Below, piece by piece: positions 1 to 33,590 of a stretch of DNA of 35,058 nucleotides; positions within the stretch are counted from its first letter, which is position 1; each line of letters starts with the position of its first letter. Position numbers and translations under genes: made by a program. The DNA lies in the NCBI GenBank assembly GCA_900088475.1, contig FLMG01002524.1, positions 1 to 35,058 of the forward strand, read 5' to 3'. Source of the stretch: Hyphochytrium catenoides. Its lineage: Eukaryota > Protista > Hyphochytriomycota. The notes beneath the pieces were generated by a model that ran no database searches, was not told the origin of the DNA, and worked only from the letters and a program-made list of their open reading frames with translations.

Positions 1-1560
1 ATCCACCTCGAACCGGAACATTGTGAAGGCACTCTCACACTGGTAGATGAGCTGGATCAGTAGCCTCCGGAATATCTGGAGAGCAAGGAGGCCTCCAGCT
101 CCGCAGAGGCTAGCAAGAACAAGGTTTATCGCCATTCTGGAAGAGAGAAAGAGCGCAAGAGAGACCTCCCCCTCCTCCTCCTCCCGTACTTCTTGGTCTT
201 CCCCTCCAAGTAGCTCTATCTTCTCCGCTTTTGTCCTGTTATTTCTTGCGTTCTCCTCCCTCTCTGTCTTCCTCGGCTCTGTTCCCGCTTCTGCTGCTCC
301 CTTCATGCGCAGTGTTTGTTCCTGAGGGCTGACGACTTCTACTCTGCGGCCAGGTGCCGCGCCCTTCCTTCTCTTTGCTTTGTTAGCCTTGCTTTCCTGA
401 TAGACGCTCCAACTGAGAGAGAGGTAATATCCCAGGGTGCCAAGACAGGTAGACAGCGCGACGTTCTCAAGGAACACTGGTCCTTCTTCTGTTTGGACGG
501 CCACCATCCCGTTAATCGTCAGTTGCGTGACCTCAAACGCAATCTGCATGTAGAAGAGAGTGGCGTCGACGCGCCTTCTTTTGGTCTTGATTTCTCTGTC
601 CTTCTTCCCCACTCTTCCTGGGCTGGAGCTCGCTCTTCTCTTCTCTGTGCTGTTGTCTTCTACTATTTCATTCAAAGCAAGAACAGATGAAGGAGAAAGG
701 CTCCCAGAGATGAGAAGCTTCTTGATAACAGCAGAGAGGGAGAAGAAGACTAAAGGAAGAAAAAGCTTCGCCACGGTAGGGCGAGAAAGGAAGTCTCCCG
801 GGAGACGAAGAACGAGCATGACGACAAGTGACGGAAGTCCATTAGCCACTAGATCCTTGGCAGCTCTTCCTAGGCGGTCCCAGTAATAGGAAGAGAGAGA
901 GAGAGAGTGTTGAGGAGGAGTGCCGGAAGAAGGAACAGTCTTGATGCTGCCAGAGGAGAGGAAAGACGGGGAAGGGGCGAACACTGCAGGACTGACGTAG
1001 AGGTAAAGCATAAGGAAGAGATATAGCATTTCCCCAACGTAGATGTGACGATGTAAGAGGTAGACCTGAAGAGAGAGAGAGATCGAGTCACATAGAATCA
1101 CGCCTCCGACGACTCGAAGAAGGCCCTTGTCCTTTCTGGCTTCGTAGACGGAGGAGAGAGAGCTCTCCCTGTACACGAAGAGAGCCGCGAAGAAAGAAAG
1201 GCCAGAGCCCAGTGTTGAATCTATAAGATGGCAGCCAATAGAGCAGTCAAAGACCCAGCAGGAGCGACTTTCTCCACTGCATTTCTCCCGGCAGTAGAGC
1301 GCGTCTCTCTCTTGGGGGAGAAGAGAGATCAGGAGGTACCAAGTGCCTAAGATCACACTTGCCAGGACAAAGCCTAGAGAGATAAGCAAAAGAGAGTCCA
1401 GTACAAAGAGAAAGACTTGCGCCACTCTGTGCGTCTTTCCTCGTCCTTCAGGAGAGCCTCGAGAGAAAAATAGAGAGAAGGTTTCCTTCTGTTGTCTGTC
1501 AGCTACCAGTCCTTCCTTTCCTCCTGCCGGCATGACTTTCTTCTGGGCCTGTGGTTGCAT
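1..1560 (-). CDS. Orphan multi-pass membrane protein, paralog A (3' end runs off the left edge of the window; 520 codons visible)
   Basis: Manual translation from ATG 1560, with an in-frame TAG at 1564-1566 just upstream: MQPQAQKKVMPAGG...VFLFVLDSLLLISLGFVLASVILGTWYLLISLLPQERDALYCREKCSGESRSCWVFDC...GEMLYLF...ANGLPSLV...AKLFLP...RVDATLFYMQIAFEVTQLTINGMV...NVALSTCLGTLGY...LFLSSRMAINLVLASLCGAGGLLALQIFRRLLIQLIYQC...FRFEVD. It is collinear with the 12897-14702 protein. It is absent from the ORF track because no stop lies inside the window. Confidence 0.88.
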   Translation of the reverse strand, partial: MQPQAQKKVMPAGGKEGLVADRQQKETFSLFFSRGSPEGRGKTHRVAQVFLFVLDSLLLISLGFVLASVILGTWYLLISLLPQERDALYCREKCSGESRSCWVFDCSIGCHLIDSTLGSGLSFFAALFVYRESSLSSVYEARKDKGLLRVVGGVILCDSISLSLQVYLLHRHIYVGEMLYLFLMLYLYVSPAVFAPSPSFLSSGSIKTVPSSGTPPQHSLSLSSYYWDRLGRAAKDLVANGLPSLVVMLVLRLPGDFLSRPTVAKLFLPLVFFSLSAVIKKLLISGSLSPSSVLALNEIVEDNSTEKRRASSSPGRVGKKDREIKTKRRRVDATLFYMQIAFEVTQLTINGMVAVQTEEGPVFLENVALSTCLGTLGYYLSLSWSVYQESKANKAKRRKGAAPGRRVEVVSPQEQTLRMKGAAEAGTEPRKTEREENARNNRTKAEKIELLGGEDQEVREEEEGEVSLALFLSSRMAINLVLASLCGAGGLLALQIFRRLLIQLIYQCESAFTMFRFEVD

Positions 1561-2371
1561 AGTCTAGCTCCTGACTATCACGTTCTTGTTCTCTAATGAT
1601 CACATCAGCTCTCTTCGCATGTCCTCCTCGTAAGCAAGGCAGTAGCAGGCATCACCAGCAATGGTGTCTCTCCTCCGTTAGCCTGCTGGCGTAGCATAGC
1701 CAAACGATCTCTCATCATTTGCTTCTTGTCCAGTCCTGCCGTCCAAGAAGTTAAGAAGCGTTATCGCTCTGTGCCACGTCACGAACTAACGTGGATCAAC
1801 TTGCTCTCTTGTGCCCGAGGCTGTTCTCTCTTCTCTCTTCATACAGGGCCCGTCTTCTCTTCTCTTCTCTTTATTCTTCTCTCTTCTTATCCCGGCCTGG
1901 CCGGCTCTTCTCCTCCGTGGCAAAGCAACTGAGAGGAGGCTCGCCGTGAGTTTCCTTTGTATCAGCACTTTGTGCTGAAGTCGGTGCTTTGTCTCTCAGT
2001 GCAAAAGACGTTCGCTTAGCTCCCCAAGCTCTTCTCTCTCATAGGAGGATCGATTTCGTTCCTCTCTCCCTCCCCCGCCGATCCCACCGCGTGGTCTCTC
2101 TCCTTCTTTTCCTCTCTCTCTCTGTCTCTCTCTCTGTCTCTCTCTCTGTCTCTCTCTCTCCCTCCTCTGAGGCTCTCCTCTGCCGCTCCTCCTCCCCCTT
2201 ACTTTCTGCTGCTCAAGCTTTGTAACGGCTGATCCAGGAAGGATGGGTGGGAGCAGGGAATAAGTGAGGAGGGCTAGGTGTGCCATCTCTCTCTCTCTCT
2301 GTCTCTCTTGTTCTCCTCTCTCTCTCTCTTCTCTTTTTCTCTCCTCTCTCTCTTTCTCTCCTCTCTCTCTT

Positions 2372-2406
<35 letters not shown>

Positions 2407-3907
2407 NNNNNNNNNNNNNNNNNNNTCCTGAATGACCATAGTAGCATGGCCCGTCCCAGCCCTGGGGAGCCTCATCAAGAAGACGAAAGAGACTTTATAG
2501 GAAGTTCCAAGCGAAGAGAGCTTGCGCACGGGCGACAGACGATAGCCTTGATGATAGACCTGGCTTCTCAGCTGCAGCCCGGCCGTAAGATGCTTTGTGA
2601 TGATGATAGCAGAAGAGTCATTCAGCCAACAAGTCGGTGCGTTGCAGGACACGGACATTGAGAACTCAGAGAAGACGATCCAGTCTTTCTTCTGCGTAGA
2701 GTCCCGACTCCAGGCAAGTCGACAGCAGGGAGGAGGGTCTTTTGCCTCTTCTTCTCTCCACTTCTGCCACCTCCTCTGCTTCTTCTTCGTTCATCTCAAT
2801 GATCTTCTTCTTCCGCTTCTTGTGCTTCCCTTTGCTTTTCCCTTGCCCTCCTCCATCATCCCTGCTGCTGCGTTCAGCCTCCTCCGTCTTGTGCCCCGGC
2901 CGCGTCTGTGCCGCACCTCGTCCTTTTCCTGGTTCTTCCACCTTGTCCGCTTCTCCTTCGGTCCTCCTCCTACTGCCTGACCTCTTGGCCTGTGCCATGT
3001 ATCGCTGACAATATTCTCAGTCTCTCTCTGTCATTCCTTGTCTTCGCCCACCTCTTCCTTGTCTTCTTTCTTGCTGCTAATAGTGTCATACTCCTATTAC
3101 TTCTCGCCTCATCTATCTTGAACCTTGCTGGTCCTATACGTAGGAAGTGCTATACTTGTCAGTCAATAGACCAGCAGGTAGCGTCGAGAACAGAGAAAGC
3201 AGCGATGCATTATATGGTAAAGGCCAAATCAAAGTGCAGAAGAAGCGGGAACAACGACGTGGTGAAGGCTTTAGCCTTCTCTCCTTGAACCAGGATCTGA
3301 CCTTGGTCTTTCCTGAGCACAAGACATCATCGCCTTTGGCATCGAACGACGAGACCATCAGCTGCTGCCAAGGATAGTGAGGCCAAGGAAAGCACTACCT
3401 CACGTTATCTATTAAGTCGAGTGTGAGCGAGAGCTCGCGGCTAATACTTTCCAGTAGAGGCGCCGCCTCGCGAGCATTTGCTCCTAAAATTTATCGAACC
3501 ACCTACCTTTTCCCTTATCCTCTCTGCCGCTCTTTCCCCCCGACGAGCACGCGCTGGTCATGAACTTCTTTAGCTGCTTCGTCTTTCATAGCCTTTGACT
3601 CTTCTTCTGTCGTTGGCCTCTCTAACCGCACTTATCAACAGCTTTGAAGGAAAGGCATAAAGATGAGAACATGTCACATGATTGCAAGCGATTGTAAGCC
3701 TGTGCCGTAGTTAATGTTAAACGATTTAAATTATCTCTATAGCTTTATCAAAGGGCGGCATTGCATTGAAGAAATAGCAGTATAAGAGTTGCATCCACCA
3801 CGCTAAGAGCTTGTCCAGCTTCAGAACGCCACCGTTGGCAGCTCCATACTCCCGTGCTTTAAGCCGATTGACCCAGAGAGAAAGCACGAAAAGACAATGA
3901 TTCAGTT

Positions 3908-5495
3908 CTAAGCCGTGGCTGGCGCTGGTACCTTTGGTGTAGGTGCGGGGGCCTTTGGTGTAGGGGCTGGCGTAGGTGCAGGGGTCTTTGGTGTAGGAGC
4001 TGGCGTAGGTGCAGGGGTCTTTGGTGTAGGGGCTGGCGTAGGTGCAGGGGTCTTTGGTGTAGGGGCTGGCGTTGGTACCGCTGGAGGATTGGATGGAAGG
4101 ACACGTGCCCTTTGACCGTTGTAACGAACATCATGAGAGTTGTTCGGTGCGCAAGACGCATACTCATTGACCTCAAAAATGTTGCCTGCACATCTGTCAG
4201 TGAACTGATCACAGCACATGGATTGCGGGCATGCTTTGTTATTCGTCGGACCGCATGTTCTGTCCTTGGTGATTTCCAAGCCAGCCCAGTTCTTGGTAGG
4301 CCGTGGTGCGCATTTGACCTTATTGGTAGGGTCGAAACCCGCAAGCTTGGCTGCACGACACACGTTGATCAAGCCGTGACCGTAAGCATCGTCTCTCCNN
4401 NNNNNNNNNNNNNNNNNNNNNNNNNNNNNNNNNNNNNNNNNNNNNNNNNNNNNTGCGAGTGCCCCTGGTGGTAATGTAGGCCCTGTTAGGGGTGCTTGTA
4501 TACGTATCTTCTCCTGGTGCAGCGAGGTCAACCTGGGCATTGCGCTTTGAGTCATAGACAACCTCTGCAAAAGCATCTACGGATCCCACGGAGATGACAC
4601 TGTCATAGGAAGCAGGGTAGCTCACTTGAGCAGCGCTATAGTCGCCTGCGCCGGCGACAAGCAAGGCTCCTCCATTGTAGAGTTGACGGTATGCCTCTTC
4701 CTCAGCGGCGGAATAGTCGGGACCGAGCAAACCTAGATGAATGATCACTTTTGATGAACCAGCCTCTTCCTTGCACTTCTGAGCGGCCGCAATAAGGTCC
4801 GAGGGATAAGCCTGGCAATAGTTGTTGAAGATGTTGAATGAGCGGATCGCTACACCACGTGCTACGCCAATGCCACCACGGGAGGCTATAGTTCCAGCGT
4901 ACCGAGTCCCGTATGCACAGCTATCTACGAGATCTCTGTCGGCTCCACTGAGAGGGACGCCAGCCAGGCCCTGGTGCTGACGTTGGACGCCAGAGGAAAT
5001 CACACAGACTTTCAACGCACTGGCAGGAGCTCCGGCGGCATTGAACGGAGTCACGTCGGCACCAATCATCTTTACACCATAAGTGAACGACGAGACTTGT
5101 TGCAGTTCCCTGTGAACAGCCCGAAGGGTACGAGAACCTCTGGGAGAGAGAGTCTGAGGGACGGAAGTGGAGTTGCGGATAACATCTTTCTCTATTTTGG
5201 CAACATCAGGAAGAGAGGACAGAGCCGCGATGGCACTTTCAGAGGTGATCTGGACAGCTTTGGCCCCAATGATAGCGAGGTCATGCACCTTCTTGATATG
5301 TGAATGGTCGTTGATGAAGGAATCCAACTTGTCAAAGCTTGCCTTAGAAATGCCGAGCTTGTCAACTCCCGCAGAGTCTCTCACTGCTGGGTCTCTTTTC
5401 AAGTACACGATGTACCGCCCTGGGCTCTGACTATCAGACGCAGTCGCCGCGCAGGCGAAAAGTGCCATGAGGATAACACGTTTAAGAGTCAACAT
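3908..5495 (-). CDS. Secreted subtilisin-like (S8A) protein, predicted catalytically inactive: signal peptide, I9-like prodomain, S8 domain, Cys-rich hevein/CBM18-like module and Pro/Thr stalk
   Basis: ORFs 4320..5495 and 3908..4576 join across the N gap 4399-4453. Visible elements are the signal peptide MLTLKRVILMALFACAATA, the prodomain RYIVYLK, S8 motifs KVCVISSG, YGTRYAGTIA, GIGVARGV, LLVAGAGD, YPASYDSVISVGSVD, QVDLAAPG and TTRGTR, and after the gap RDDAYGHGLINV, CGPTNNKACPQSMCCDQFTDRC and (PAPTPKT/PAPT)n ending at TAG 3908-3910. No intron is visible. Confidence 0.9.
3911..4085 (-). repeat. Coding tandem repeat for the Pro/Thr-rich stalk (33-nt unit, [11 protein letters not shown])
   Basis: Plus strand shows repeated ggggtctttggtgtaggggctggcgtaggtgca units. 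Confidence 0.9.
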
Positions 5496-8400
5496 CTTGC
5501 TACGGTGGATCTTTCCTCCGGCTTATCTCTCTCTCCTTGGTTATGGAAAGGTCTTGGGTGCTCCTGTTATAGGTTAGGACTTGGGACTGCGTCTTCAGTC
5601 TTCGGAGGAAAGTTGGAAAGTGATGGGTAGAGAGCTCTATCTGTGGTCGCCAGGAGGATTACCTGGGAAACCTCGAATGGGGCAGATAGACGCGCACTAA
5701 CCTGGGCTTCAGAGGGGAATAGCTGTTCAAATGTCCAGCAACTTACCGCTTTACCGCTTCTGCTTATAGTCAGGAGAATGCATTCTAGCTCTTTTGGCCA
5801 TACTCGTCCCCGTTATATCCCTACAAGATATTTCTTCGGCGAAGCTACTGGCTCTGGCAACCGCCCCGCATATTGAGTTTACCTCGTGGTAGATGCTGCT
5901 CCTTCCTTGAGGATCAGAGAGGAAGCAGATCAGGAAGACAGCAGCCAGGCATTCCCTTCCTTCGACCAAGAGGCACGACGAGAGCGAGAAACAATCGATG
6001 TGTCAAGGATGGGGAGGCAACATCCCCTATACACGTGATTTGAAGTGTCAGATGGATTGCCATTTTGAGTGTCGTTTTTACCTTTGAAACAGAGCCAACG
6101 GGGCGACGGGCACTAGCGGTCTTTAGTACTCAGCCAACGGAACCGCAAGCGATCCACATCGATCCTTCATCGGAGGTAGTGGATATTTCATGGGAAGTAC
6201 GAGGGTAGTACACCCTACTATCTCAGCAATGAATAGCTGAGCAGCTCTCGTTCTACAGTGAGAGAGTGCGGTCCTGGCCGTGTCTGAGACGGAGAGCAAC
6301 CTTCGCAAGTCAGCGGGCTGATCCATCGACGACCCAACCAATTATCCCTGCGCTATGGAGGATGTGGCTCTACTTGTTACCGTTTCTGTGGACCTTATCA
6401 CTCCTGCGAAAACGTCTACAGCGTTTGGACACCGACAATGTACCATCAAGGGATACCTACCCATTCTTTCCTGCCGAGAACGTCTGGGATAATATTTAAA
6501 AACGATAATGCTCAGATCAAGAAGGGCCGTTGCCCAATTTACCTTCTGTATGAACGTGCACCAGCCCTGATCCTACTGAAGAGGTTCAGATAATAATAAG
6601 CTGCGGTGGGCGGGATCAGCTTTACACCTTTTGTGAGATTAGAGGCACATTAGTGTTAGAAGTTAGAACTATCACGACTTTTTTCCGGGCTGTTATTCTC
6701 ACGTTGATGCATCCGCGACCAGCGACTACTGCTAGCACTTGTCAGAGGTAGAAGGATGAAGGAGAAGGGGAAGAAGAAGAAGGAGGAAGAGAGAACAAGC
6801 GCTACCAAAGCCAAAAAGCCTTAGTCTCTTCATCGGCTCTAGACTATCCGCTCCACACTCATTTTTTAGAAGAAGGAAGAATCATAGTTGACTTCTTTGA
6901 TAACGAGAGGAGAAGAAGATGATGAACCGCCGACGGCGGTTGTAATTATTGAGGGGATGGAATAGAAGAATAGTTATTATCAGGAAGGACTACTGAGCCC
7001 TTCGGAGTATTCTAATGCGTTTGCGCTTACTCCTAGTGCTACGCTGGCCTCGTAAGGTATCAATACCACTTGGGCACGGAGCAATAAAAGAGCAAAAAAG
7101 TTCCTATATATGAAAAAAAAGAAATCAACAGTAGTTCTACTACCGTTTTACCGAGGGACACAAACAAGACGGGCTTATCCTTACTATTCTAAAGGTTTTA
7201 GGACATCCCCCATCTCAAGACCGCGCCTGCTGTTGGCGTTGTTGGACGGTCAGGAAGGCATCCTCGCCAATCATAGCATTAAGTCTGAGACCTAGACCAT
7301 GGGAAGGTGGACGGAGACACAACGGTAGTAGTAGAACTATAAGTAGGGCAAAGGAAGGGCATGGAACTAATAATAGCCCTCTGAATCTGTCTTGGGTCGC
7401 CCTATCCTTAAATGTCGACATATGCGGTGCTGTGGCCATCATGATTGGTAGCTCCGCCCAAGGCTCTTCTCCAACGATCCAACAACCATGTAGTTCCTAT
7501 TATTAGTTCATTCCAGCGAAGATCTCTTAGACTGCCATGTTCGTGTTCCTTTAGCACTGCTCTGTACAATTAACGCAATAAAGTGGATTGTTAGTAGGCA
7601 GTCCTGTTTTCGCTGTGTTGGGGTGGCTTTCATTAGAAATGATGGGCTGGAGGAAACAATGAAACCAAGAATTTCATAAGACGCACACGGAACACTAGAG
7701 TGACGTCCTTCTGGCTGGGGTTGGTTTATGTCATATTCCTATCCAAGGAGTTCACACGGCAACCACTATCGCCACGGCCGCCGTGCGGGTCGTTCTACCA
7801 AGGGCAATCTGATCAGGCCGGACAATCCTTTAGTTTGACAAAAAGCTTGCGCCTGCGCGGATGTTCTTCTCAACACCTGCAATGCTCCTTCGAGGCTTTC
7901 ATCAACTCTTTCCTCAGCCTGAGAAAGCCTCGTAGCAGACGGAGCCAGCAGCCACCAATCATACTGCCCGTGACCCTCATTAGAAACCAGACATTTTGCG
8001 TGCCATCCATCCAGAAGGGCTCGCGAATGGCTGGATTAGCTGTGGGAGAGGGCAGATGATAAAAGTGTTTCACTAACGCTTTTGACCCTGGGTGGTCGCT
8101 TCTTTGAGTGACGACACGAGCTCCAGTGTTGAAAGATCTGAGGTGAGCTGCACAGCCATGAAAATTTGAGGTGACTGGTTAGCGAGGTTTAGAATGACTG
8201 TGCCGTCTATTAGGGGTCCGGTACATTGTTTGATTATTGTCGTGACATAATCAACAAAAAAAAAGAGGACACCCAGAAGATCCACCACTGAGAAGTCGTC
8301 ATCGCGGGAGCTACAAGCTTGTAATAAGAGACGTGCCTTTGTTTGTCAATCTCCCTTCTGAGTAGTAGTAGCTCATCCATTCTGATGTCGTAACATGAAA

Positions 8401-8971
8401 ACAGTGACGGATGGTGCTGGTGATGTTTCCAATAAATACACAGCACAGAAAGAAGTTAGCGGGTTACTCCGCTGGAGGAACCTCTTCAAAAGGCAATAGA
8501 ACTATCTGAACGCATCGTGGTGGGGGCTTAGAAGAGATCGAGCCAACAGCTCTAGCAGTGGCCTAGCAAGACCTCTTGGCCGAGAGGGGTCGTTCTACTT
8601 CTACGAGTTCGCCGTCATCAGATAATCCATACAATATGCAGAGGATTTCCTTCCAAGGCCCTTGAGATTATTGCAAAGACTGTAGACTACCAGCCACAAT
8701 AGGAGCCGGATCTTTTTCCAACAAAAGGATCGCCACCACAGCCGGCAGCCCGTCCGTAGCAGCAGTGAAGGCTCGCAATTGGCTGGATTCGGTGTGGTTC
8801 GCAGATGCGGATCAGTTGGTCTTTGAGTTGACTGTTCATTACCGTCACAACTGTGTGGTCGCTCCTTGTTATTACTGGCGTCGTCGCGGCCTCAACCTTA
8901 CCGGATCGATACGGTCAAGGTTTGAACGCCCAAATTTGCGAGTGTGGATCTAGATGTAGCCCAGCAAGGTT

Positions 8972-9032
8972 TTGAACTTCTCTGTCTGACCAGTTGATCT
9001 TCTCTGTCTGTTCAGTTGAACTTCCCTGTGTG
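8972..9032. repeat. Degenerate 22-bp tandem repeat, about 2.8 copies
   Basis: ttgaacttctctgtctgaccag / ttgatcttctctgtctgttcag / ttgaacttccctgtgtg. Confidence 0.75.
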
Positions 9033-9993
9033 CCTTGGGACAAGGCGTCTGTATACCGTAAGAAACCTTATGCGAAGGAAGAAGGACCTACCAAGAGTCT
9101 TCCGGCACCACTGAAGATAAAATAGCCGAGAGAGCCTATCAACCATCACTGAAGAGAAAAATCCTCTGGCCACGGTTGGGCCGCGTTGTGTTTTCGTTTT
9201 TAATGAGCCTACGGAGCACAGCAAAGTGGTCATGGTGGTGAAGAGATGATGATGTCCGCGATGCGGAGATTAGGTTCTCTCCTGGCGCCTTGCTCGTTCG
9301 GTCCGCCTTAACCCTGGCTTGCGGAAGTGGCAACAGAAGTGGAGGCCCCATTGATCCGAGCTGCACTGCGAAGGGCCTCAGGATGATGTACCATCCGTTT
9401 GTTCCCGTCGCTGCTGCAGATGAACATGACTGTCTGTTTAGGTAGGTGAATAGTAGGTGATAGAGTGATCGATAGTCTGCTAGTCGGGAGAAGACGGAGT
9501 GAAAGGCTCTTCCTGTCGCTTAACTTGTGATTAGTTACCATATTCAATGGAGACGATGCATCATCCTTAGAGGTAGTACGGCCATTCTTCCGCATCATAG
9601 CGCCGTGTTTCCTCGGCAAGGAGAAGCACAAATACGGTAGATTAGAATCGTTGTTTCTCTCTCTATCTTCCTCCTCTCTCCTCTCCCTTTTCTCGTTTTT
9701 CTTTTCTCAATTTCCCTTGGCTTTCTCTTTTCTCTTTCTCTGGCTCTTTCTTTGCTTTCTCTCTCTTCTTGGCATATCAACGCATTCTTTGTTCTACCCT
9801 CTTTCGAGTCTTCATAGTGCTTAGTGATTCCACTGTCCGTTACTTCGTCATTCCGTCCTCCCTCTTCCTACTTCGAGAGGAGGCGGACGACCTTACTTTC
9901 TCTTCTTGACCGTGAACACGCAGTCCTAGATTATTTGTTCTCCTTTTGCTAATCCAACAGCCAGGCTCAAGCCCTCTTCAGCAAATATATGTA

Positions 9994-10067
9994 GGAACAG
10001 CAAGGTTCTTACCAAGCGTGCACGGAACAAGGTTCTTACTAACGAGAGGTTCCTACTAACGAGAAGG
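9994..10067. repeat. Short imperfect direct repeats (aggttcttactaacgag-like, 3 copies)
   Basis: caaggttcttacc ... caaggttcttactaacgag aggttcctactaacgag. Confidence 0.7.
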
Positions 10068-11024
10068 TGAAGTCATCGATTGTGGAGTGAGCAGTGAAGA
10101 ATAAATGAGTCTTTCCATTGTCCTAAGAATCCTACGCATTGATATCTACTTCCATAATAGAGGATTATGAGGTAGTGGGGGGACGAATGAGGTAGGAGAA
10201 GCAAGGAGATGACGAAGGAGAAGAGAGAAGATACACAAACGTGGTCATATCTGTCCATCTTCGACTGACCTACAATGCCTCTGAGGCACGTGTAAGTGCC
10301 TGCGTGGACATTCGATGAGGCTTGGTGGTATAGATTTTGTGAGACCTATGCTAGCTACCAGCCAATGCCTGTCAGCGTGCCCCATTGGTCATTGTACCCC
10401 AAGTGTGAGAGTCCCACATGCTCCGACAATATAAAAGTAGTACTACAGATGAAGATCACCTCTCCTACTACCACTACTACCACCAGCAACAGCAGCTCCT
10501 CTTCTGTTGGCACTTTGAGCTGTACGGCGAAGTGCTGCGAGATAATCAACCGATTGTTGTTCCTCCGGCGCTGCAGATGTTGGCATGACTGTTTCTAATA
10601 CACTTTGGTAAGACTTTCTTTAGGTAGTAGGTGGATAGCATGTGATAGAGTGCTGGAAACGGGGGATGGAGTAGGGAGTGAAGCCCCGTCGCTTAGCTCA
10701 TAGTTTATCATAGGACACTGCTGCTTCTGCCGTCATAGAAAGAAGGGAATCGATGCGATGCTCAATAACAAAGAGGAGGACAAGAAGATATTGTATGTGA
10801 TGACTGCTTGGTTGAGGTTGTGCGCCGACTCAAGCGTTGATCGATGATACAACCGCTTCGTCTCTGCCCTCTCCTTCCCACCAGTGGCTTCTACCTCGAT
10901 GCTTTGCTAACAGTCCGACTACACTTTGTTTCTAGCATGGTGCGGGCTGGAAGATCAGATGATTGGTACCGAACGAAAGAGAGAAGGGGGAGAATGGTGT
11001 GCTCGACTCAAAGAGTAAGAGGCT

Positions 11025-11345
11025 AAGGGGGAGAGGGAGAAGGGAAAGAAAGAGAGGTTGAGGGGAAAGAGAGGGAGAGAGAACGAGAGAGAGAGAGAAA
11101 AGAGAGAGAGGAAAGAGAGAGAGAGCGCTGCTAGGAGAGGAGAGCGTGGGCAAGAGAGAGAGAGAGTATAAGGTGACGAGGAGATGTTTTTGAAGGGGGG
11201 AGAGGGAGAGGGGAAAGAAAGAGAGGGTGAGGGGAAAGAGAGGGAGAGAGAACGAGAGAGAGAGAGAGAGAAAAGAGAGAGAGAGTGCTGCTAGGAGAGG
11301 AGAGCGTGGGCAAGAGAGACAGAGAGATAAGGTGACCAGGAGATG
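11025..11345. repeat. Tandem duplication of a ~160-bp purine-rich unit (11025-11186 and 11193-11345)
   Basis: Both copies share non-microsatellite anchors: tgaggggaaagagagggagagagaacgag, gctgctaggagaggagagcgtgggcaagagaga and taaggtgac.aggagatg. Confidence 0.85.
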
Positions 11346-11596
11346 GTGGGAGGAAGGAGTGCGCCACGAGGTAGGCCGACAGGTGACCCACCAAAGCGCC
11401 TACAATCCGTTACAATTCTTATATATAAACTTCATTGAAACATTGTTTCTTGCAAGCTACGAATAAAGTTCCCTAGTCTAACCTATGTCTCTTTCAGAAA
11501 GAATAACAATACTATTCAGGAGTGAAACGTTACCTTTCCTCAACGCTGAGTCGCTAGCGAATGAGAGAGGGGATGAAGGGAAGCGAAGAGAGGAAG

Positions 11597-11801
11597 GAGA
11601 GAGAGAGAGAGAGACAGAGCAGAGAGAGACAGAGAGAGACAGAGAGAGACAGAGAGAGACAGAGAGAGACAGAGAGAGACAGAGAGAGAAAGAGAGAGAC
11701 AGGGAGAGAGAGAGGGACAGAGAGACAGAAGATAGAGAGACAGAGACAGACAGACAGACAGACAGACAGAGAGAGAGACAGAAAGACAGAGAGAGAGAGA
11801 C

Positions 11802-11861
<60 letters not shown>
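11597..11861. repeat. Compound microsatellite (GA)n/(GAGACA)n/(GACA)n
   Basis: Directly visible. It produces the spurious ER/RQ and SL-rich ORFs in the track. Confidence 0.95.
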
Positions 11862-11863
<2 letters not shown>

Positions 11864-12896
11864 TGTGTTGAGCCGCTAAGAATGAAAAGATGACCGGCAT
11901 GGAGGGAGTGGAAAAAAGAGGAGAGCGCGATGGGAACGGAGGAAGAGGAGGTGGAAAAGAGGGAAAAATAGACAAGGACAAGGGAAGAGCAGGAGGATAG
12001 AGAAACGCTGTTGCGATCTCAACGGTGCCTACCGCACGCACCAGCAGAAAGGAGAGATCTAAGGCATGCGGACAGACATCTAGGAGAAGAAAGAGCTTTA
12101 TCTAGAACGAGAGCAGAAGGGAAAGAGAGAGAAAGATAAGAGGAAAAGAGAGAAGTAATGAGAGACGTGGCGAAAGGCTTAGAGCTGCTGGTGGACAGAT
12201 GAAGAGTATCTCCTCTCATCTATCCTTTCCTTTTAGCTCTGGATAGTTGTTCTTTCGCTGCCTGCTGATGATCTGGATGGCACCACCTCTGCTGGATGAG
12301 AAGTTGGGAGAAGAGCGGAAGAGATACTAAGCGTAGAAACGAAAAGGAATGCAAGCATCAGGAACTCTCTCGTCCTCCAGAAGGTAGAAGGTTGCCAGGT
12401 TGATGCTGAGGCTTAGGCTTCTCCTGTTGCTCTCTCGCTCAAGCAATCATTTCTATCTCTCCGCCGACTGTCTCTCTCGGTTTGCTGCCTCCCTTTCTCT
12501 GTCTATCTGGAGATACGTTGGTCTAAGGTGCATCACGGAAGAGGTTTAGGCCAAGGGATAACGAGAGACAGTGGAGAGACCGAGAGGGTAAAAGAACCAT
12601 ACATAATATACAGGCAGAGCTCAGCAAACAAGGAACAGAGAGAGAGAGAGAGAGAGGGAGAAAGAGAAAGAGAAAGAGAGAGAGAGAGAAGAGTGAGAGA
12701 GCGAGAGCGAGGGAGAGAGGGAGAACGAGAAGTGAGCGCGAAGCAGGATGCAATAGGACGCATTAGCCGAGGAGGACGGAGAGAAGAGGCACGGAAACAA
12801 TAGAGCACGATGTGTCTAACGGATAGCGGGGCCCGAGGAATAATGAAGAGGACAGAGGAATAAAGGTCCCATCTTAGGAGACAGGAGAAGGACCTC

Positions 12897-14702
12897 ATGG
12901 GTCGCCTTCCTCTCACGAGTCAGCACAGGAAAGTAGTGCCCGCAGGAGGAGGAGGAGAAAAACCCACCGAGAGGAGAGGCGAGAAGAGCGGAGAAGAAGG
13001 GAAAAGAACAGAGCTCTTTGCCTCTCCTACTTCTCTCTGCTCAACCTCCTCCCGCCCGGCACCAGCAGTACCACTGCCTCGCCTTTCGTCAACAATAGAA
13101 AGACAGAGAAGAACCAAACGGCAACAGCTTGTTCTCTTTCTCTATGATTCTCTTTTACTTATCATCCTCGGCTTTGCCCTTGCCTGCATTACGTTAGGCG
13201 CCTGGTACCTCTCCATCTCTCTTCTTCCCCGAGAAAAAGATGAGCTCTTCTGCATTCGGAAATGTAAAAGCAACCGCTCGTGTTGGCTGTTTGATTGTTC
13301 TGTAGGGCGCCACGTCATGGACATGACACTCAGTATCCCTCTCTCTTTCCTGGCGCCCCTCATTGTTTACAGAGCGAGCTCTCCACCTTCTCTCTTCCAA
13401 CGAGAGAAAAAAGGACTGCTCAAAGCCGCGGCGTGGATTATCTTGGTTGACCTTGTCTCTCTTCCCATCCAGGCACACGTGGTTCACTATGACCTCTATT
13501 GTGGAGAGGTCCTCTATCTTTTTCTTCTCTTCTATCTTTACTTCCACCCATGTCTCCCATCGTTTGTTCAGCCCTCTTCTTCCTCTTCATCGCCAGTTAG
13601 TTTCGTTCGCTCTCTCTCGGATTCATCCTCCTCTAAACGAGCAACAGCAGGAACTTGCCTGAGAAGATTCACAGCCAATGGCCTCCCGTCTTTGGTGACC
13701 ATTGTCTTTCTCCGGCTTCCAGTGGAGCTTGTGTCTCTCCCTCTCGTTGCAAAGCTCGTCATACCCGGTCTCTTTTACCTTGTCTCTGCCTACGTCAAGC
13801 AGCTTCTTGCTGGTGTTTTCTCTCTCCCTTCTGTGCCTCTCCTCAACAACAACAAGGAAGATGGGAAGAAGAATAAGAAGGAAAAAGAAAAGAACGCCGG
13901 ACACGGAGTGAGAGAAGAGAGAGAAAAGAGGGTTGATGCCACTCTTTTCTCCATGCAGTTGGCTCTAGAAGTGACACAACTAGCGATCAACTGTATGGTA
14001 GTGGAGGCGACCGACGCCGTTGTCTTGCAGAACGTGGCACTCTCCACGTCCTTCGGCGCTCTGGGCTATCTTCTTTCTGTGTGGTGGAGCGTGAGTAGAG
14101 TGACGACAAAGAAGATGATGGAAGGGAAGAGCAATACTGGGAGCCCACCGAGTGCAGGCGACATAGGAGCAGAAACACGTGCCAACAACCATCAGCGGGA
14201 GAAAGAAAGAGAACATCAACAGGAGGAGAAAAGAAAGGAGGAGGAACAGGACGAACAAGAGAAAAGGAGAGAACAGAGGAAAATTAAAGAGCACTCTCTC
14301 TTCCTCTCGACAAGAATGGCAGTCAGCCTCGTCCTTGGCAGTCTCTGCGGCGCTGGCGGCCTGCTATCCCTGCAAATATTCCATCGCCTGCTATTGCGGC
14401 TCATCTATGGCTGTGATGCCTCCTTATTGCCAGTCTTTCGCCCTGACGTGGATCTACTGCTGGTGCTGATCGTTTGGGCCGTGATGTGCCTGTTTGTGCT
14501 CATCCTGCAGATGATCGGAGTGGACTTTCTCTCTGTTTGGAACGAAGAGAGACGATCTTTCTTTTGGATGGTGACGATTGTTCTCTTCTGCTATGGGCAG
14601 TACTTCTACTCTATGCTGCTCTCACAAACACTCGGCACCTCTACCAGTTGTACTCCTCTCCTGCACTCTTCCCCTCTATCTTCTCTCTCCCTCTCTCCTT
14701 AA
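12897..14702 (+). CDS. Orphan multi-pass membrane protein, paralog B (601 aa, intact, intronless)
   Basis: Longest ORF in the window. It has about 11 hydrophobic segments by eye, separated by two charged K/E-rich loops, and a Cys-rich loop CIRKCKSNRSCWLFDC after TM1. It shows strong protein-level similarity to the 1-1560 and 17781-19635 copies. Confidence 0.92.
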   Translation: MGRLPLTSQHRKVVPAGGGGEKPTERRGEKSGEEGKRTELFASPTSLCSTSSRPAPAVPLPRLSSTIERQRRTKRQQLVLFLYDSLLLIILGFALACITLGAWYLSISLLPREKDELFCIRKCKSNRSCWLFDCSVGRHVMDMTLSIPLSFLAPLIVYRASSPPSLFQREKKGLLKAAAWIILVDLVSLPIQAHVVHYDLYCGEVLYLFLLFYLYFHPCLPSFVQPSSSSSSPVSFVRSLSDSSSSKRATAGTCLRRFTANGLPSLVTIVFLRLPVELVSLPLVAKLVIPGLFYLVSAYVKQLLAGVFSLPSVPLLNNNKEDGKKNKKEKEKNAGHGVREEREKRVDATLFSMQLALEVTQLAINCMVVEATDAVVLQNVALSTSFGALGYLLSVWWSVSRVTTKKMMEGKSNTGSPPSAGDIGAETRANNHQREKEREHQQEEKRKEEEQDEQEKRREQRKIKEHSLFLSTRMAVSLVLGSLCGAGGLLSLQIFHRLLLRLIYGCDASLLPVFRPDVDLLLVLIVWAVMCLFVLILQMIGVDFLSVWNEERRSFFWMVTIVLFCYGQYFYSMLLSQTLGTSTSCTPLLHSSPLSSLSLSP

Positions 14703-15363
14703 AACTCTATCATCAATAGCTCCTTTACTTTTGTCGTCATCATGGCGCCATTGCTCTTCTTCTGTGTGCCTCTTGCATGAGAGTCCTTGTTACCTCTTCC
14801 TCCACTGCTGGAGAGTAAACATAATAGGAGAGGACGAGGAGAGACCAATAAAAAAACGAACAGCAGGTGGTCAGACAGAAGGAGGACAGCGGCGACCAAC
14901 AAGAAGCACTCGACGACGAGAGATTTCTGAACAAACATAATTCTAGTGAGCTCCTCTATGATGGCTTCCTCTTGCTCCTCTCCTAGTGGTCCAATTGAAT
15001 CATCTTGTCTATACACCTCTTAGGACGTGACTGACTTTATCATTAGCACGTCTATAGACATTGATATTTGCTTTTTGAGGTAACTCGTCGTAGACTAGGC
15101 TTCTGGGCGATGGGACATGTAGACAAAGGAATGCTTACATACTCCTAATGATGAACATATAATAAACCAGCAACTACTCACTGAGAAGAAGAGGAAGAAA
15201 GAAGAAGAAGAAAGAGAAAAAGTGGTAGAGGAAGAAGGACAAGAGACAAGAGCTACTACGAAGTCTTGATCACTTTGAATAATAAGCAAACCTCAGTCAG
15301 GACTCAACAAACGAAGAAGAAGAAAGGAAAAAGAGGACGACGAAGAAGAGACAAGAGCTACTT

Positions 15364-15492
15364 TGCGGACGATGGAGACAAGGAAAATCTGACAGTACGC
15401 GCAATACTCTCCACAGGAGGCATCGTTGCGTAGTAGATAGTACGACCGCTAGGAGGTTGACCAGTGCACAAATAATCCTTGTTGCCAACAAG
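15364..15492 (+). pseudogene. Possible decayed Arf/Arl small GTPase fragment
   Basis: With frameshifts the DNA reads roughly (W)D.G.Q.KI*...R.Y, TGGIV.VVDST.R..RL and IILVANK. This matches the order of Arf WDVGGQxKIR / TQGIIFVVDSxDRER / LLVFANKQD. It needs several indels and a stop, and about 20 aa are missing before IILVANK. Confidence 0.3.
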
Positions 15493-15796
15493 AGAAGTAC
15501 ACCGCAGCTCCTGAGGAACTCAGATTCTTCACTATTATAAAGTTCAGTCAGTTGGAAGGAGAGCCAAACCCACAGCGAAGAAGAAGAGAACCTACACATA
15601 TTTATAAATTAATAAGGTGAGCCAATCTTCTCTTCCTCATCAACAACAAGCATGATACAATGCGTACGCTTACAGAGTAACTGTTAGCAAGTAACTTTAT
15701 GAGAAAGTGAAAGGAAATCGATAGGGGCGTTCTTATTATCGAGAGCCCTCCAGACAAGAGAAATAGACAGAGTCAGGGAAATGAGGTGTGAGGTGT

Positions 15797-15842
<46 letters not shown>

Positions 15843-15939
15843 GGAAGAAAGTGAATGGAATTCCTGGATCACTTCGCAGAGGAACTGAACGAAAAATTAT
15901 AGAGATGGCAACGAGAGAGAGAGAGAGAGAAAGAGAGTA

Positions 15940-15979
<40 letters not shown>

Positions 15980-16072
15980 CGGAGCATCGAGACAGAGCCA
16001 CATCTCGACAAGAACAGTACGAATTAAGCCGGTAGAGATGATAAGATGAAGTACCGCCAACGTTCTTCTCAG

Positions 16073-16364
16073 TGTGAAAACTGATAGGTTACACATAGAA
16101 CTAGTGTAACCACATTTTCACATTTATGTTTCACACCCGCGGGTCCTCCTCTCTCTCTAGCTTGCTAGACAGAGTCCTGCACGGTGTCCTCTGTATCGCA
16201 CTACCCGCAGAGCGACGTCAGCCCCTCTGGGGGTAGCATCGAGATTTGTAGTAGTTCTAGTACTCTTCAACTCTATATAAAAGCGGTCAATAAAGTAGTA
16301 TCGTTCTACTGGTGTCAAACCGGTACAAGTACAGAAAACCAGTACAGAAGTAACACAGGTTATG
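16073..16364 (+). mobile_element. Putative LTR-like remnant with an adjacent palindrome
   Basis: TGTAAC at 16105, TATATAAA at 16274-16281, AATAAA at 16289-16294, and ...AACACA at 16357 followed by GGTTATG, which equals the first 7 nt of the copia-type tRNA-Met PBS GGTTATGGGCCCAG. No second LTR or gag/pol ORF is seen. Confidence 0.25.
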
Positions 16365-16783
16365 TATGCTCTGGGCAGCAATCGATTTATCAGATGGTTC
16401 AATGTTCCTCTGATATAATCAGAGAATGGCCAAAGAACTTCACAAAAAGAATTCACATTTTGAAGGGAACATCAGGTGAGTGGCCCGTTAACTCGCTCGC
16501 ACACTGATCTGGTTCAGCGACAGCAGTACGACGACCGCTAATGTCCCGAATCGGTATAGAACTACTAGTCTGGTCTGAACCCTTTTTAATAGTGTTAAGA
16601 GTAGTACAGTGGAAAAGTAGTAGTCCAGACGAACCTGGATCTCATGAAGGATAGAATGATTTCAACCGAGCGTGCTACTTGTACTTGTACCACAGACATT
16701 GCACCAATACAAGACTGGGATTGACCAGGGACTATATACCGGATACAATTTACAGTCCTAACACTCCCACTGAAGTCCAGGAG

Positions 16784-16843
<60 letters not shown>

Positions 16844-16891
16844 CTCTCTCTCTCTCTATCTATCTCTATCTATCTATCTATCTATCTATCT
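16784..16891. repeat. Compound (CT)n/(CTAT)n microsatellite
   Basis: Directly visible. Confidence 0.95.
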
Positions 16892-17780
16892 ACTCAGAAT
16901 CCGAAATGAGTAAGTGAGCCTCCTTGACTTCCCCATCAGGACTGTGGCCCATTCGGATTCCGGACATAGGCGGATTAACCAACAGTTATTAGGTATGTAG
17001 ATGAGGACTCAGTAACTGTAGTCGTGCACTATTGATTCCCCAACCAAGGGGCGTAACCGCTTCCACTACTCCTGTCTGTTTATTTACTAACAATAATAAG
17101 GCGGCGGCTCTACGTCTTCAATCACCTAACAAATGAGAGGACAACCGGTGCTCCGCCTCCTCGCTTTCCTCTTCATTTACGGGATGACAGAAGGAAGCCT
17201 ACGTGATAAGCTAGAACAGTGATGAGCTGCTGTTGTCGAGCTTGTTGCTGAAGGACTCCGTACCTCGCCTTCCTTTCTTCACTATCAATAGAGCTTCAAT
17301 GCCTCGTCTTGGGGACTAGCTCACCTTTCTCTGGAATGGTTCAGGGTCAAAGCTCGCGGACAACAGGGTAGAAGAGCTAGAAAAGAAAGCAAGGCACCCA
17401 AAAGTAGTGAGGACAAGGAGAAGCAGCAACGCCCCAAAGAGAGAGAGAGAGGACAAACAAAGAATAGAGCTCCTCTAAGAAGACTAGCAGCAGAGGCGTC
17501 CGGAAAGAGAGAAACGTGAACAACAGGAAAAGAGAGGACGATACAGAGGAGAAAGCAAGAGGCAGAAGGATCATATTATTCAGATGCAGAAGAAGCAGGA
17601 GCAGCTTCACAATGAGAGAGATCAGAAAGAAACAAGATCTTAACCGGAGTAGCAAGGGACGGAATGAAGAAGAGAACTGGAAAAAGGAAGTTGAGATGAT
17701 GCTCAACCCATGAAAGAAGAAAACGACTGCAGAGGAAAGACGGATAAAGACTCCATCTCAGGAGACAGGAGAAGGTTCTC

Positions 17781-19635
17781 ATGGACCTCTCTCTTCTCTC
17801 CGGTCAGCACAGTAAAGTACGACCAACTGGAGAAGCAGAGGACAACGCGAAGGAGGAGGGAGGAGAGGAAGGGAACAGGAGAGAACAATTAGTCTCTTCT
17901 TCTTCTCTCTGCGTTACCGCTTACTCTCTACCAGCCCCCGTCAAAGTGCGTCGTCTTTCACTAATAGAAAGACGGCAAAGAACCAAACGTCAACAGCTTT
18001 CGGTCTTTCTGCTTGACTCTCTTTTACTGGTCCTCCTCGGCTCTGCCCTTGCCTGCATTACCTTAACTGCCTGGTACCTCTCCATCTCTCTCCTCCCACG
18101 AGAGATACACCCGCTCTACTGCCTGCGGAAGTGTCAAAGAAGCCGCTCTTGTTGGCTGTTTGATTGCGCTGTAGGCCGATATATCGTGGACGTAACACTC
18201 AGCATTCCTCTCTCTTTCCTGGCGCCCCTCATTGTTTACAGAGCGAGCTCTCCCCGTTCTCTCTTCCAAATAGAAAAACGGGGACTTTTTAGATTAGCGG
18301 CATGGATTATCTTGGTTGATCTTCTCTCTCTTCCGGTGCAGTCGCACGTGGTCCACGCTGACCTCTATTGCGGGGAGTTCCTCTATCTCTTTCTTTTCTT
18401 CTATCTCTACTTCTACCCATGTCTTCCGTCGTTTGTTCGGCTCTCTTCTTCTTCTTCGTCTTCTGCATCCACTCCTTCTCTTTTCTCTCTCTCAGGCCAG
18501 TCCCTTCCTAAACGAGCAAAAGCAGGTACGTGCCTGAGAAGATTCACAGCCAATGGCCTTGCGACCTTGGTGACCATTGTCTTTCTCCTGCTTCCAGTGG
18601 AGCTTGTGTCTCTCCCTCTAGTAGCGAAGCTCGTCATACCCTCTCTCTGTTTCCTTATCTCTGCCTACATCAAAAGGCTCCTCGCTGGTGTCTTCTCTCT
18701 CCCTTATCTGCTTCTTCGCAATACCAAGGAGGAAAAGAACAAGAAGAGGAATAGTGGACCAATAGCGGGAGAAGGAGTGCGAGAGGAGAGGGAAAAGAGG
18801 GTTGATGCAACTCTCTTCTGCATGCAAGTGCCCTTAGAGGTGACGCAACTAGCGATCAACTGTATGGTGGTGGAAGCGACCGACGCCGTTGACTTGCAGA
18901 ATGTCGCACTCTCCACGTCCTTCGGCGCTCTGGGCTATCTTCTTTCTGCCTGGTGGAGCTTGAATAAAAGTGAAGACAAATAAGAAGGAAGAGCACAAGA
19001 GGAATAGCACTCTCTTACAAAGTGGAGGTGAGATAAAAGCAGAAACATGTGCCCACAAGCAACAACGGNNNNNNNNNNNNNNNNNNNNNNNNNNNNNNNN
19101 NNNNNNNNNNNNNNNNNNNNNNNNNNNNNNACAGAGAAGTATTGACGAGCACTCCCTCTTCCTTTCGACCAGAATGGCAGTCAGCCTCGTCCTTGCCAGT
19201 CTCTGCGGCGCTGGCGGCCTGTTAGCCCTGCAAACATTTCATCGGCTGCTACTTCGGCTCATCTATGGCTGTGATACCTCCTTATTGCCAGTCTTTCGTA
19301 CTGAAGTGGATCTTCTGCTGGTGCTGATCGTTTGGGCCGTGATGGGGTTGTTTGTGCTCTCCCTACAGGTGATCGGACTGGACTTTCTCTCTCTCTGGGA
19401 GGAGGAGAGACGATCTTTCTTCTGGATGGCGACGATTATTCTCTTCTGCTACGGGCAGTACTTCTACTCGATGCTGCTCTCAAAGATACTCGCCAACTCC
19501 ATGGACTGTGCGTCTGACCTTCACTCCGTTTCTTCATCTTCTCCTCTCCCTCTCTCCATAGAGACATTAAGTCACATCTCTCTTTCATCTACACATGGCA
19601 AGGCTCGCCTGCTTTTCCCTCTCTCTTTCTATTAG
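17781..19635 (+). pseudogene. Orphan multi-pass membrane protein, paralog C, with a +1 frameshift at ~18966-18969 (pseudogene or assembly error)
   Basis: ORF 17781..18983 matches the N-terminal two thirds of paralog B and ORF 18970..19635 matches its C-terminal third. Paralog B reads agc gtg agt aga gtg acg aca and paralog C reads agc ttg aat aaa A gtg aag aca, one extra A in an A4 run that gives TAA at 18981-18983. An N gap follows at 19069-19130. Confidence 0.8.
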
Positions 19636-19875
19636 CGTTACATTAGAAGAATGGATAATAAATAAAAGTGTATATCCCTCCTACGATCAGGAGAGAAGAA
19701 GGATCAAAGACCGAGGAGAGAGAGAGAGCACTTGAGTCTAGAGAGAGAAGAAGAGATACTGGACTTACGAGAGAGAAGTGACGACACAGAGTCGTGACGA
19801 CACAGAGTCGGAGCTCAGATGAAGGCAAGGACGACTAAATAATAAATAAAGTTGATAGTGAAGAGAGGAGAAGGG

Positions 19876-19929
<54 letters not shown>

Positions 19930-19969
19930 AAGAGAGACGGAACGTAGGGAGAGAAGAGAAGGAGATAAC

Positions 19970-22900: not shown

Positions 22901-23047
22901 AAAGTTTGCAATGGGTTGCCAGTAGGAGACGGCCTGGAAGGTTGTCTTTGCTGTCTGGCCATAGATGGGAGAGAACAGAAGGGAGAGCGCAAAGCAGGAG
23001 ATAGACAGCTGCATGAGCCCGCCTAGGTAGAGGAAGGACAGAGCCAT
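19970..23047 (-). CDS. Secreted fungalysin metallopeptidase (family M36) with FTP/PepSY propeptide; 4 exons
   Basis: Exons: 23047-22248 (TG|gtaag); 21951 to about 21156, with the donor in the N gap (acag|G, giving [19 protein letters not shown]); 20913-20810 (ttag|[36 protein letters not shown]|gtacg); 20675-19970 (ttag|A TGG). Motifs: N-terminal hydrophobic signal, [16 protein letters not shown] (FTP), [44 protein letters not shown] (HExxH), [24 protein letters not shown] and FAKRGLG. Confidence 0.95.
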
Positions 23048-24446: not shown

Positions 24447-24517
24447 TCTCTCTCTCTCTCTCTCCCTCTCTCTCTCTTCTCTCTCTCTCTGTCTCTCTCT
24501 CTCTCTGTCTCTCTCTT

Positions 24518-24552
<35 letters not shown>

Positions 24553-24571
24553 TTCTCTCTTTCCCTCTCTT
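24447..24571. repeat. (CT)n-rich microsatellite
   Basis: Directly visible. Confidence 0.9.
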
Positions 24572-26936: not shown

Positions 26937-26947
26937 CTCTCTTCCCT

Positions 26948-27023
<76 letters not shown>

Positions 27024-27025
27024 CT

Positions 27026-27068
<43 letters not shown>

Positions 27069-27070
27069 TT
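26937..27070. repeat. (CT)n microsatellite tract upstream of the ABCF gene
   Basis: Directly visible. Confidence 0.9.
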
Positions 27071-27480
27071 CTATCCCGTCTCTATCAACCCACCTCTTTT
27101 CTCTTTCTCTTGGTAGGACCCCTTCCCTCTTCCTCCCAACCTCCACCTCTCTCTCTACGAGTACTTGTTGTCCGCCTCTCTCTCCTTTCCAATCTCTCTC
27201 CTCTCTCGCTCTCTCCGCTCTCTCCCTCTCTCTTTTCTCTCCTACTGTCGTGTATCTCTCTGTCTCTCTGCTGATCAGTCTTCCAAACTCTCAACAACAA
27301 CCTCCGCATTCACCTGGCAAACTCTTGATAAACTCTCTCTCTCTCTCTCTCTCTCCTCTCCCTTACGTATCCTCCTCCATCTTCCAAAAACAGCAAGAGC
27401 GCAAGTGGCAGAAAGTTTCTTCTCTTTCGCTCTCTCTTCCCATCTGAAGCCCAAGAAGAGAGGAAAAGGAGACAAAAAGG

Positions 27481-33219: not shown

Positions 33220-33257
<38 letters not shown>

Positions 33258-33533
33258 CCCCTACTCACTTCTCTTTCTTTCCAAGTATTTCCCTCGCTCT
33301 GTCTCTCTCCTTCACCCTCTCTTTTTTTTTCTTTTTCTCTGTCTCTCTGTCTCTCCTTTCCCTCTACTGGTCTCTTTCTCTCGTCTTCCTGGTCTCCTGT
33401 ACCGTTTTATTAATTTAGAGTAGTAGGGAACCCTCAGCGCCTCTCCCTTCACCGTCACCTTTGACACAAGAGGAGGACCAGAACCCGCCAGAGACGAGAA
33501 GGAAAGCGAGAGAGAAGAGAGAGAAGAAAAGAC

Positions 33534-33535
<2 letters not shown>

Positions 33536-33588
<53 letters not shown>
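33536..33588. repeat. (GA)n microsatellite
   Basis: Directly visible. Confidence 0.95.

Positions 33589-33590
<2 letters not shown>

Follow-up and report, generated by a model that had tools for sequence, protein, structure and literature searches.

Three tandem genes of a probable lineage-restricted, intronless family of predicted eleven-helix membrane proteins in Hyphochytrium catenoides

TMEM16, TMC and OSCA proteins form a superfamily of channels and scramblases with a fold of ten transmembrane (TM) helices. Judged by structure models, this is nominally the fold closest to that of three related genes found in contig FLMG01002524.1 of Hyphochytrium catenoides (positions 1–35,058; this whole stretch is the window, and coordinates are window positions). 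The proteins encoded by these genes, designated copies A, B and C, differ from the ten-helix plan by an eleventh predicted helix and a C-terminus placed outside, and no cluster of acidic calcium-binding residues on helices 6–8 is visible in the alignments of their family. The family matches no described family, nor any solved structure with confidence. In our reading the window probably holds three tandem paralogues, of which one is intact, one is cut by the scaffold end and one is frame-shifted or misassembled, and which are members of a multi-pass membrane protein family that has no introns and is restricted to one lineage. The copies and their parts are the following:

1 to 1560, minus strand: copy A, with its ATG at 1560 and 520 open codons, no stop being reached before the scaffold start at base 1
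12897 to 14702, plus strand: copy B, an intact intronless open reading frame (ORF) of 601 amino acids (aa), the reference for the structure model
17781 to 18983, plus strand: N-terminal portion of copy C, 400 codons comprising TM1–TM8, with TAA at 18981–18983
18964 to 18968, plus strand: A-run with the single extra base of copy C, a +1 shift relative to copy B in the B–C DNA alignment
19069 to 19130, no strand: assembly gap in copy C, 62 N of estimated length, inside the variable charged loop
19132 to 19635, plus strand: C-terminal portion of copy C in the +1 frame, comprising TM9–TM11 and the terminal cysteine, its end including the stop codon

Three homologous reading frames had been predicted at <1–1560 (minus), 12897–14702 (plus) and 17781–19635 (plus), and they are present at exactly these positions. 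In the protein alignment copies B and C are 72% identical and copies B and A 47%, with E-values (4e-170 and 3.5e-103, respectively) that are far beyond chance. Every motif block named in the original prediction was found in the alignment of the three copies. These blocks include DSLLL..LG, C-x3-C-x5/6-CW.FDC..G, GE.LYLF, ANGL and AKL..P as well as RVDATLF.MQ...EVTQL.IN.MV, NVALST..G.LGY and LFLS.RMA...SLCGAGGLL. The description of the genes as intronless and clustered likewise holds, since copy B is a single ORF that aligns end to end with its paralogues, and copies A and C are collinear with it except for the scaffold end and the one-base shift. Copy A is not broken; base 1 is the start of the scaffold, and the C-terminal portion of about 80 residues is unassembled. 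DNA homology between copies B and C is confined to the coding sequence and 53 nucleotides (nt) upstream. The three copies also have in common an N-terminal motif, Q-H/x-x-K-V-x-P-A/T-G, which is surrounded by a variable cytosolic N-terminus:

12924 to 12944, plus strand: N-terminal motif, copy B
17808 to 17828, plus strand: N-terminal motif, copy C
1528 to 1545, minus strand: N-terminal motif, copy A

Purifying selection maintains the helices and outer loops of these genes. Ratios of nonsynonymous to synonymous divergence (ω) were calculated by the Nei-Gojobori method (NG86), with the core defined as helices plus short outer loops. For copies B and C, ω is 0.39 overall (synonymous divergence, dS, 0.49), 0.27 in the core and 0.55 in the loops; for copies B and A it is 0.21 overall, where dS is saturated, 0.14 in the core and 0.40 in the loops. 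Protein identity in the B–C and B–A comparisons amounts to 82% and 61% in the helices, 79% and 49% in the outer loops, and 57% and 30% in the predicted cytosolic loops, within which nearly all indels fall. The originally predicted pattern of a constrained core with drifting loops is borne out by core ω values of 0.14–0.27 versus loop values of 0.40–0.55, and the drifting parts turn out to be the predicted cytosolic loops. GC content at third codon positions (GC3) is 0.53–0.56, like that of adjoining intron-containing host genes.

The prediction had counted one of the copies as broken, and a frame break is indeed present in copy C. Beyond the 400 codons the coding sequence is taken up by the +1 frame, which is open from 18970 and reaches its stop at 19635, and it is this frame, not the original one, that is homologous to copy B (VKTNKK... 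versus VTTKK...; GEIKAETCAHKQQR versus GDIGAETRANNHQR). One single-base insertion thus accounts for the entire break. The extra base is an event separate from the gap, whose edge lies about 100 nt downstream and in which copy C has 62 N where copy B has 74 nt. As scaffolded, the frame of copy C is identical on both sides of the gap (18970 before, 19132 after), which is not proof of continuity because the gap length is an estimate. Downstream of the break copy C is 85% identical in DNA to positions 14273–14701 of copy B, with an ω of 0.38 and no relaxed constraint; as this part is still conserved, any inactivation would be recent. The Hyphochytrium catenoides assembly is a short-read assembly from a heterozygous diploid (PMC5795050), and for this reason, together with the proximity of the gap edge, the extra base is perhaps an artefact. 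It may be real, heterozygous or introduced by the assembly, and the call of one broken copy hangs on this single base. Two further gaps in the window (2407–2425 and 4399–4453) fall in an adjoining subtilase-like gene and touch no paralogue.

At least 25 loci of this genome belong to an intronless superfamily, of which the window trio makes up a divergent clade. A genome-wide search with a profile built from 11 members gave 46 matches at about 25 loci and recovered copies A, B and C at E-values of 1e-115 to 1e-43. About 20 of these loci have intact ORFs of 470–1047 aa and are spread over about 20 scaffolds. A search with copy B as query also gives weaker matches (22–32% identity), which lie in long open frames elsewhere in the genome, on scaffolds other than that of the window. 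All members follow a collinear plan (D-S-L-L-L in helix 1, the Cys loop, VD..LF.M...Q.LQL, LW.RMA, QLLYGPY and a terminal cysteine). The window trio shows both the collinear blocks and the single uninterrupted ORF by which superfamily members are recognized (alignments A2, A3 and A5), at 20–24% identity to the remaining superfamily. Tandem pairs occur on contigs C4137 and C3249, and stop-containing fragments lie beside a gene on C2090; the clusters on all three contigs align with the window copies.

In a tree obtained by a quick search, with support from the Shimodaira–Hasegawa-like approximate likelihood ratio test (SH-aLRT) only, the trio forms a clade with 100% support on a long stem. Apart from the three window loci this clade contains only a contig of 1304 bp, C3574, which over its whole length (1–1304) is 93% identical to positions 12011–13287, including 886 nt upstream of copy B. 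It spans this upstream region and the first 130 codons of the gene, with a dS of 0.054, and represents a divergent haplotype that the assembly left uncollapsed or else a fourth copy of very recent origin. The original view of a three-copy orphan family does not hold: the superfamily counts at least 25 loci in this genome, the trio makes up a single long-branched clade of it, and relatives turn up in four or more other sequencing runs. The birth-and-death pattern proposed at the same time is a fair description in view of the tandem pairs, the stop-containing fragments and the approximately 20 intact copies genome-wide. An intronless family is unusual here because genes of this genome contain 3.64 introns on average (PMC5795050).

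Relatives outside the genome were sought by a HMMER profile search over 1.84 billion representatives, drawn from a collection in which NCBI oomycete proteins are included. Of 13 matches eight are real and five spurious, and no named oomycete or other protein is among them. The eight real matches are singletons; Logan assemblies of four or five sequencing runs contributed seven of them and ENA one. Runs with foreign relatives are SRR28521184, SRR28521185, SRR28521206, SRR21279713 and SRR32051688. Two of them are 94–95% identical to Hyphochytrium paralogues, and for one of the respective contigs 95% identity extends across 3 kb, flanks included, which identifies it as another strain or haplotype. 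Five are full-length distant relatives with about 20–32% identity, and P0008 is a short and very divergent one. The outside relatives are likewise intron-free. One run-derived homologue is nested in the quick tree within a Hyphochytrium subclade other than that of the window trio, and the subfamilies are therefore old. On one foreign contig, the gene neighbouring a relative is 73–89% identical to Hyphochytrium exons, which hints at a related organism as the source of that contig. In a different contig, from the Logan assembly of run SRR32051688, the distant relative P0005 stands tail to tail with a neighbour, at L065:3052-3879 on the minus strand, that is the C-terminal fragment of a further member; thus, the family is clustered in another organism too. 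The Logan contig of run SRR21279713 that carries the distant relative P0004 (2048 bp) has an identical 30-base string at both ends, a hint that the assembled unit of about 2 kb is circular or repeated in tandem. P0009–P0013 were rejected as relatives because the matches are spurious (Stn1, DUF5684, weak PFF1_TM).

Other routes to relatives gave less. Searching proteins by word index, first with copy B and also with a 28-sequence alignment as query, returned no matches and is uninformative, as even relatives found otherwise were missed. A metagenome scan with patterns of the trio itself produced 98 pattern matches and no relative, and the 28-sequence alignment offered no stretch conserved enough as a query for such a scan. 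By language-model features, the nearest entries are clusters of oomycete transmembrane proteins in the ESM Atlas, with scores of 0.92–0.94 to the paralogue on contig C2498 and of 0.88 to copy B. These clusters (about 417–530 aa, about 110 members each) are of comparable length, and their source, the oomycetes, is the sister lineage of hyphochytrids. Unlike the relatives described above they were not recovered by HMMER at E ≤0.001, so that their likeness, seen by language-model score only, is a lead.

Eleven long helices emerge from hydropathy as well as from two AlphaFold2 models, in keeping with the approximately 11 TM helices of the original prediction. The copy B model has a predicted local distance difference test score (pLDDT) of 78.6 and a predicted template modelling score (pTM) of 0.78, with low pLDDT in the TM8–TM9 loop; the respective values for the C2498 paralogue are 83.8 and 0.83. 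The predicted topology comprises a cytosolic N-terminus, eleven TM helices and a C-terminus outside. This orientation is based on the K/R-rich N-terminus and inner loops and on the conserved cysteines, which are confined to predicted outer loops. A test for internal repeats detected none. Three parts of copy B stand out:

13251 to 13298, plus strand: TM1–TM2 outer loop with C119, C123, C129 and C134 and an N-x-S site at N126
13929 to 14000, plus strand: helix 7 (RVDATLFSMQLALEVTQLAINCMV), with conserved polar D, Q, E, Q and N within the membrane span
14091 to 14297, plus strand: charged TM8–TM9 loop, predicted cytosolic, the most divergent and indel-rich region of the family

Conserved cysteines comprise the four in the TM1–TM2 loop, C506 in the TM9–TM10 loop and C585 in the tail. 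All four TM1–TM2 cysteines are invariant across the window copies; superfamily-wide (alignments A2 and A3) C119, C123 and C129 are invariant or nearly so and C134 is not. Conserved polar residues (Q/E, D, Q, Q, S, N, E, Q) occur in helix 4 and in helices 7–11. Both the cysteine-rich outer loop and the polar residues inside helices, which had been anticipated from the window alone, are thus supported by the alignments and the predicted topology.

The absence of a known transporter, G protein-coupled receptor (GPCR) or channel signature, asserted in the original prediction, agrees with the Pfam results, where 28 members yielded sub-threshold noise only (GEMI5_RBS, PFF1_TM, Claudin_3, ZIP). PFF1_TM (PF22251, the transmembrane domain of a vacuolar membrane protease) was hit by 2 of the 28 members with a best E-value of 0.0019, below the 32.3-bit cut-off, and was treated as noise. 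A sequence profile search of the PDB gave charged-loop noise only (E ≥0.38). The proposed fold check with AlphaFold and Foldseek found no confident match to known folds: against the PDB the best values for both models were an E-value of 0.04 and a TM score of 0.15. A fold search of the ESM Atlas remained at TM scores ≤0.30, and a viral structure library gave no match. Seven-helix receptors were rejected because there are 11 helices, no Pfam 7TM match was obtained and alignments with GPCRs are partial and of low Z. Repeat-built transporters (MFS, MATE and similar) were rejected as well, as neither the internal duplication of a helix bundle nor the fold similarity that mark them was found.

In both structure searches the best full-length membrane-protein matches belong to one superfamily, TMEM16/TMC/OSCA, with other membrane folds at ≤5.0. 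The scores lie within the noise range for helical proteins and come without sequence or profile similarity. At E-values up to 1, none of the 28 members matches the Pfam models for Anoctamin (PF04547), RSN1_7TM (PF02714) or TMC, whereas the genuine anoctamin and OSCA genes of this genome match those models at 3e-71 and 3e-19, respectively. Comparison of alignment A5 with the anoctamin alignment A6 by hhalign gave a probability of 0.4% and an E-value of 0.14, a weak test because A6 has only 5 sequences. Given the weak scores, the alignment shared by the models, the failed anoctamin profile comparison and the presence of separate anoctamin and OSCA genes, we do not place the family in TMEM16/TMC/OSCA. 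That it is a very remote TMEM16/TMC/OSCA-TMEM63 branch, i.e. a dimeric channel or lipid scramblase with a ten-helix core and an extra C-terminal helix, appears unlikely. The Hyphochytrium anoctamin on C807 (L069:1264-4497, minus strand) is itself a single ORF, of 1077 aa, and its closest relatives are oomycete anoctamins, three of four of which are fused to a C2 domain (P0014–P0016).

What the proteins do can be addressed by a tentative model. Each protein would span the membrane with eleven helices and have an outer loop of the disulfide type behind helix 1, and the conserved polar residues of helices 4 and 7–11 may line a hydrophilic path. Such a path could provide channel or facilitator activity, and the fast-evolving charged TM8–TM9 loop on the cytosolic side might be the regulatory part. 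We regard a channel or facilitator role with a variable, regulatory TM8–TM9 loop as possible, short of probable. More doubtful is the bolder proposal of a new fold class of eukaryotic channel or scramblase, either a deep TMEM16/TMC/OSCA branch or an independent eleven-helix architecture, which would have expanded beyond 25 copies among hyphochytrids and organisms related to them and of which the window trio would be a specialised subfamily.

Two other functional readings compete with this model. The D, E, Q and N residues conserved within helices might just as well serve catalysis or substrate binding, and the adjoining genes encode secreted proteases, a fungalysin M36 and a subtilase-like protein; both facts would suit a non-conducting protein, be it an enzyme embedded in the membrane or a component with a structural or trafficking role in the cell wall or the endomembrane system. 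However, neither structure search shows likeness to MBOAT, GT-C, rhomboid or other membrane-enzyme folds, the alignments contain no conserved histidine or classical catalytic motif, and gene neighbourhood is of little functional meaning in eukaryotes, which makes this reading improbable. The original prediction, which named a chemoreceptor, channel or transporter repertoire, proposed that this may be an undescribed sensory family; the reading considered here is a repertoire of chemosensory or other ligand-sensing receptors diversified by birth and death. Hyphochytrids have swimming zoospores that need chemotaxis, the paralogues are many, with tandem clusters and some broken copies, and the outer cysteine loop may bind ligands. 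Yet the outer loops are short and conserved (49–79% identical), and variation resides in the predicted cytosolic loops (30–57%, with most indels), contrary to what ligand-driven diversification predicts. With the variable regions on the predicted cytosolic side of the membrane, we consider the sensory idea unsupported and distinctly improbable.

Decaying or foreign DNA, be it pseudogenes, a giant-virus insertion or another horizontal transfer, would explain the missing introns. Intronless genes are unusual in this genome and giant-virus insertions are known from it (PMC5795050), and the frame break in copy C could be read as decay. Against this stand the long intact ORFs with core ω of 0.14–0.27, the approximately 20 intact paralogues dispersed over about 20 scaffolds, a GC3 equal to that of flanking intron-containing host genes, the lack of any viral structure match and subfamilies that predate the split from another organism. 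Native composition, many dispersed intact copies and purifying selection thus make such an origin highly unlikely, and we regard it as largely refuted.

Four points weigh against a lineage-restricted family of tandem multi-pass proteins as we describe it. An exact look-up of copy B in public assemblies, aimed at transcripts, returned no record. The alignments behind the two AlphaFold2 models are shallow, with 20 and 28 sequences drawn from one and the same family, so that the models are not mutually independent. The channel or facilitator guess is based on the conserved polar residues in helices together with the weak fold resemblance. Finally, given the scores of 0.88–0.94 for the oomycete clusters, the family may be wider than HMMER can detect.

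If a function were established, the genes would add a new family, possibly with a new fold, to the multi-pass membrane proteins of the stramenopile 'pseudofungi'. Membrane proteins of practical use are already known from this group, for the potassium-selective channelrhodopsins HcKCR1 and HcKCR2 originate from this genome. The rhodopsin Pfam model picks out an exon of 100 residues that agrees with HcKCR2 (PDB 8H87) at 100 of 100 positions, which settles the host as a hyphochytrid and not an oomycete. A coccidian or Phytophthora source is thereby rejected; searches for SRS and elicitin were blank, with silent controls. More than 20 intact copies under purifying selection are probably important for the biology of the organism, and candidate roles lie in the behaviour of zoospores, in osmotic or ionic homeostasis and in the remodelling of the wall or of membranes. 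Orphan families are common in poorly studied protists, and the immediate surprise is therefore moderate.

The cluster sits among ordinary host genes. The pieces of the fungalysin gene contain the FTP propeptide motif along with both the N-terminal and the C-terminal part of Peptidase_M36, the last piece with an E-value of 4e-86. The neighbouring genes are:

1996 to 5495, minus strand: subtilase-like gene (Peptidase_S8, E 3.5e-12), interrupted by the gaps at 2407–2425 and 4399–4453
19970 to 23047, minus strand: multi-exon fungalysin M36 metalloprotease gene in three ORF pieces
about 29365 onward, plus strand: ABC-F gene

Purine-rich (GA-type) simple repeats recur in the intergenic DNA on either strand, and they are the cause of the extreme GC and AT skew at 10–13 kb. 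They are located, among other places, at these positions:

11000 to 11860: GA-type repeat
12630 to 12730: GA-type repeat
15800 to 16000: GA-type repeat
16784 to 16895: GA-type repeat
19860 to 19965: GA-type repeat
24447 to 24594: GA-type repeat
26920 to 27280: GA-type repeat
33190 to 33690: GA-type repeat

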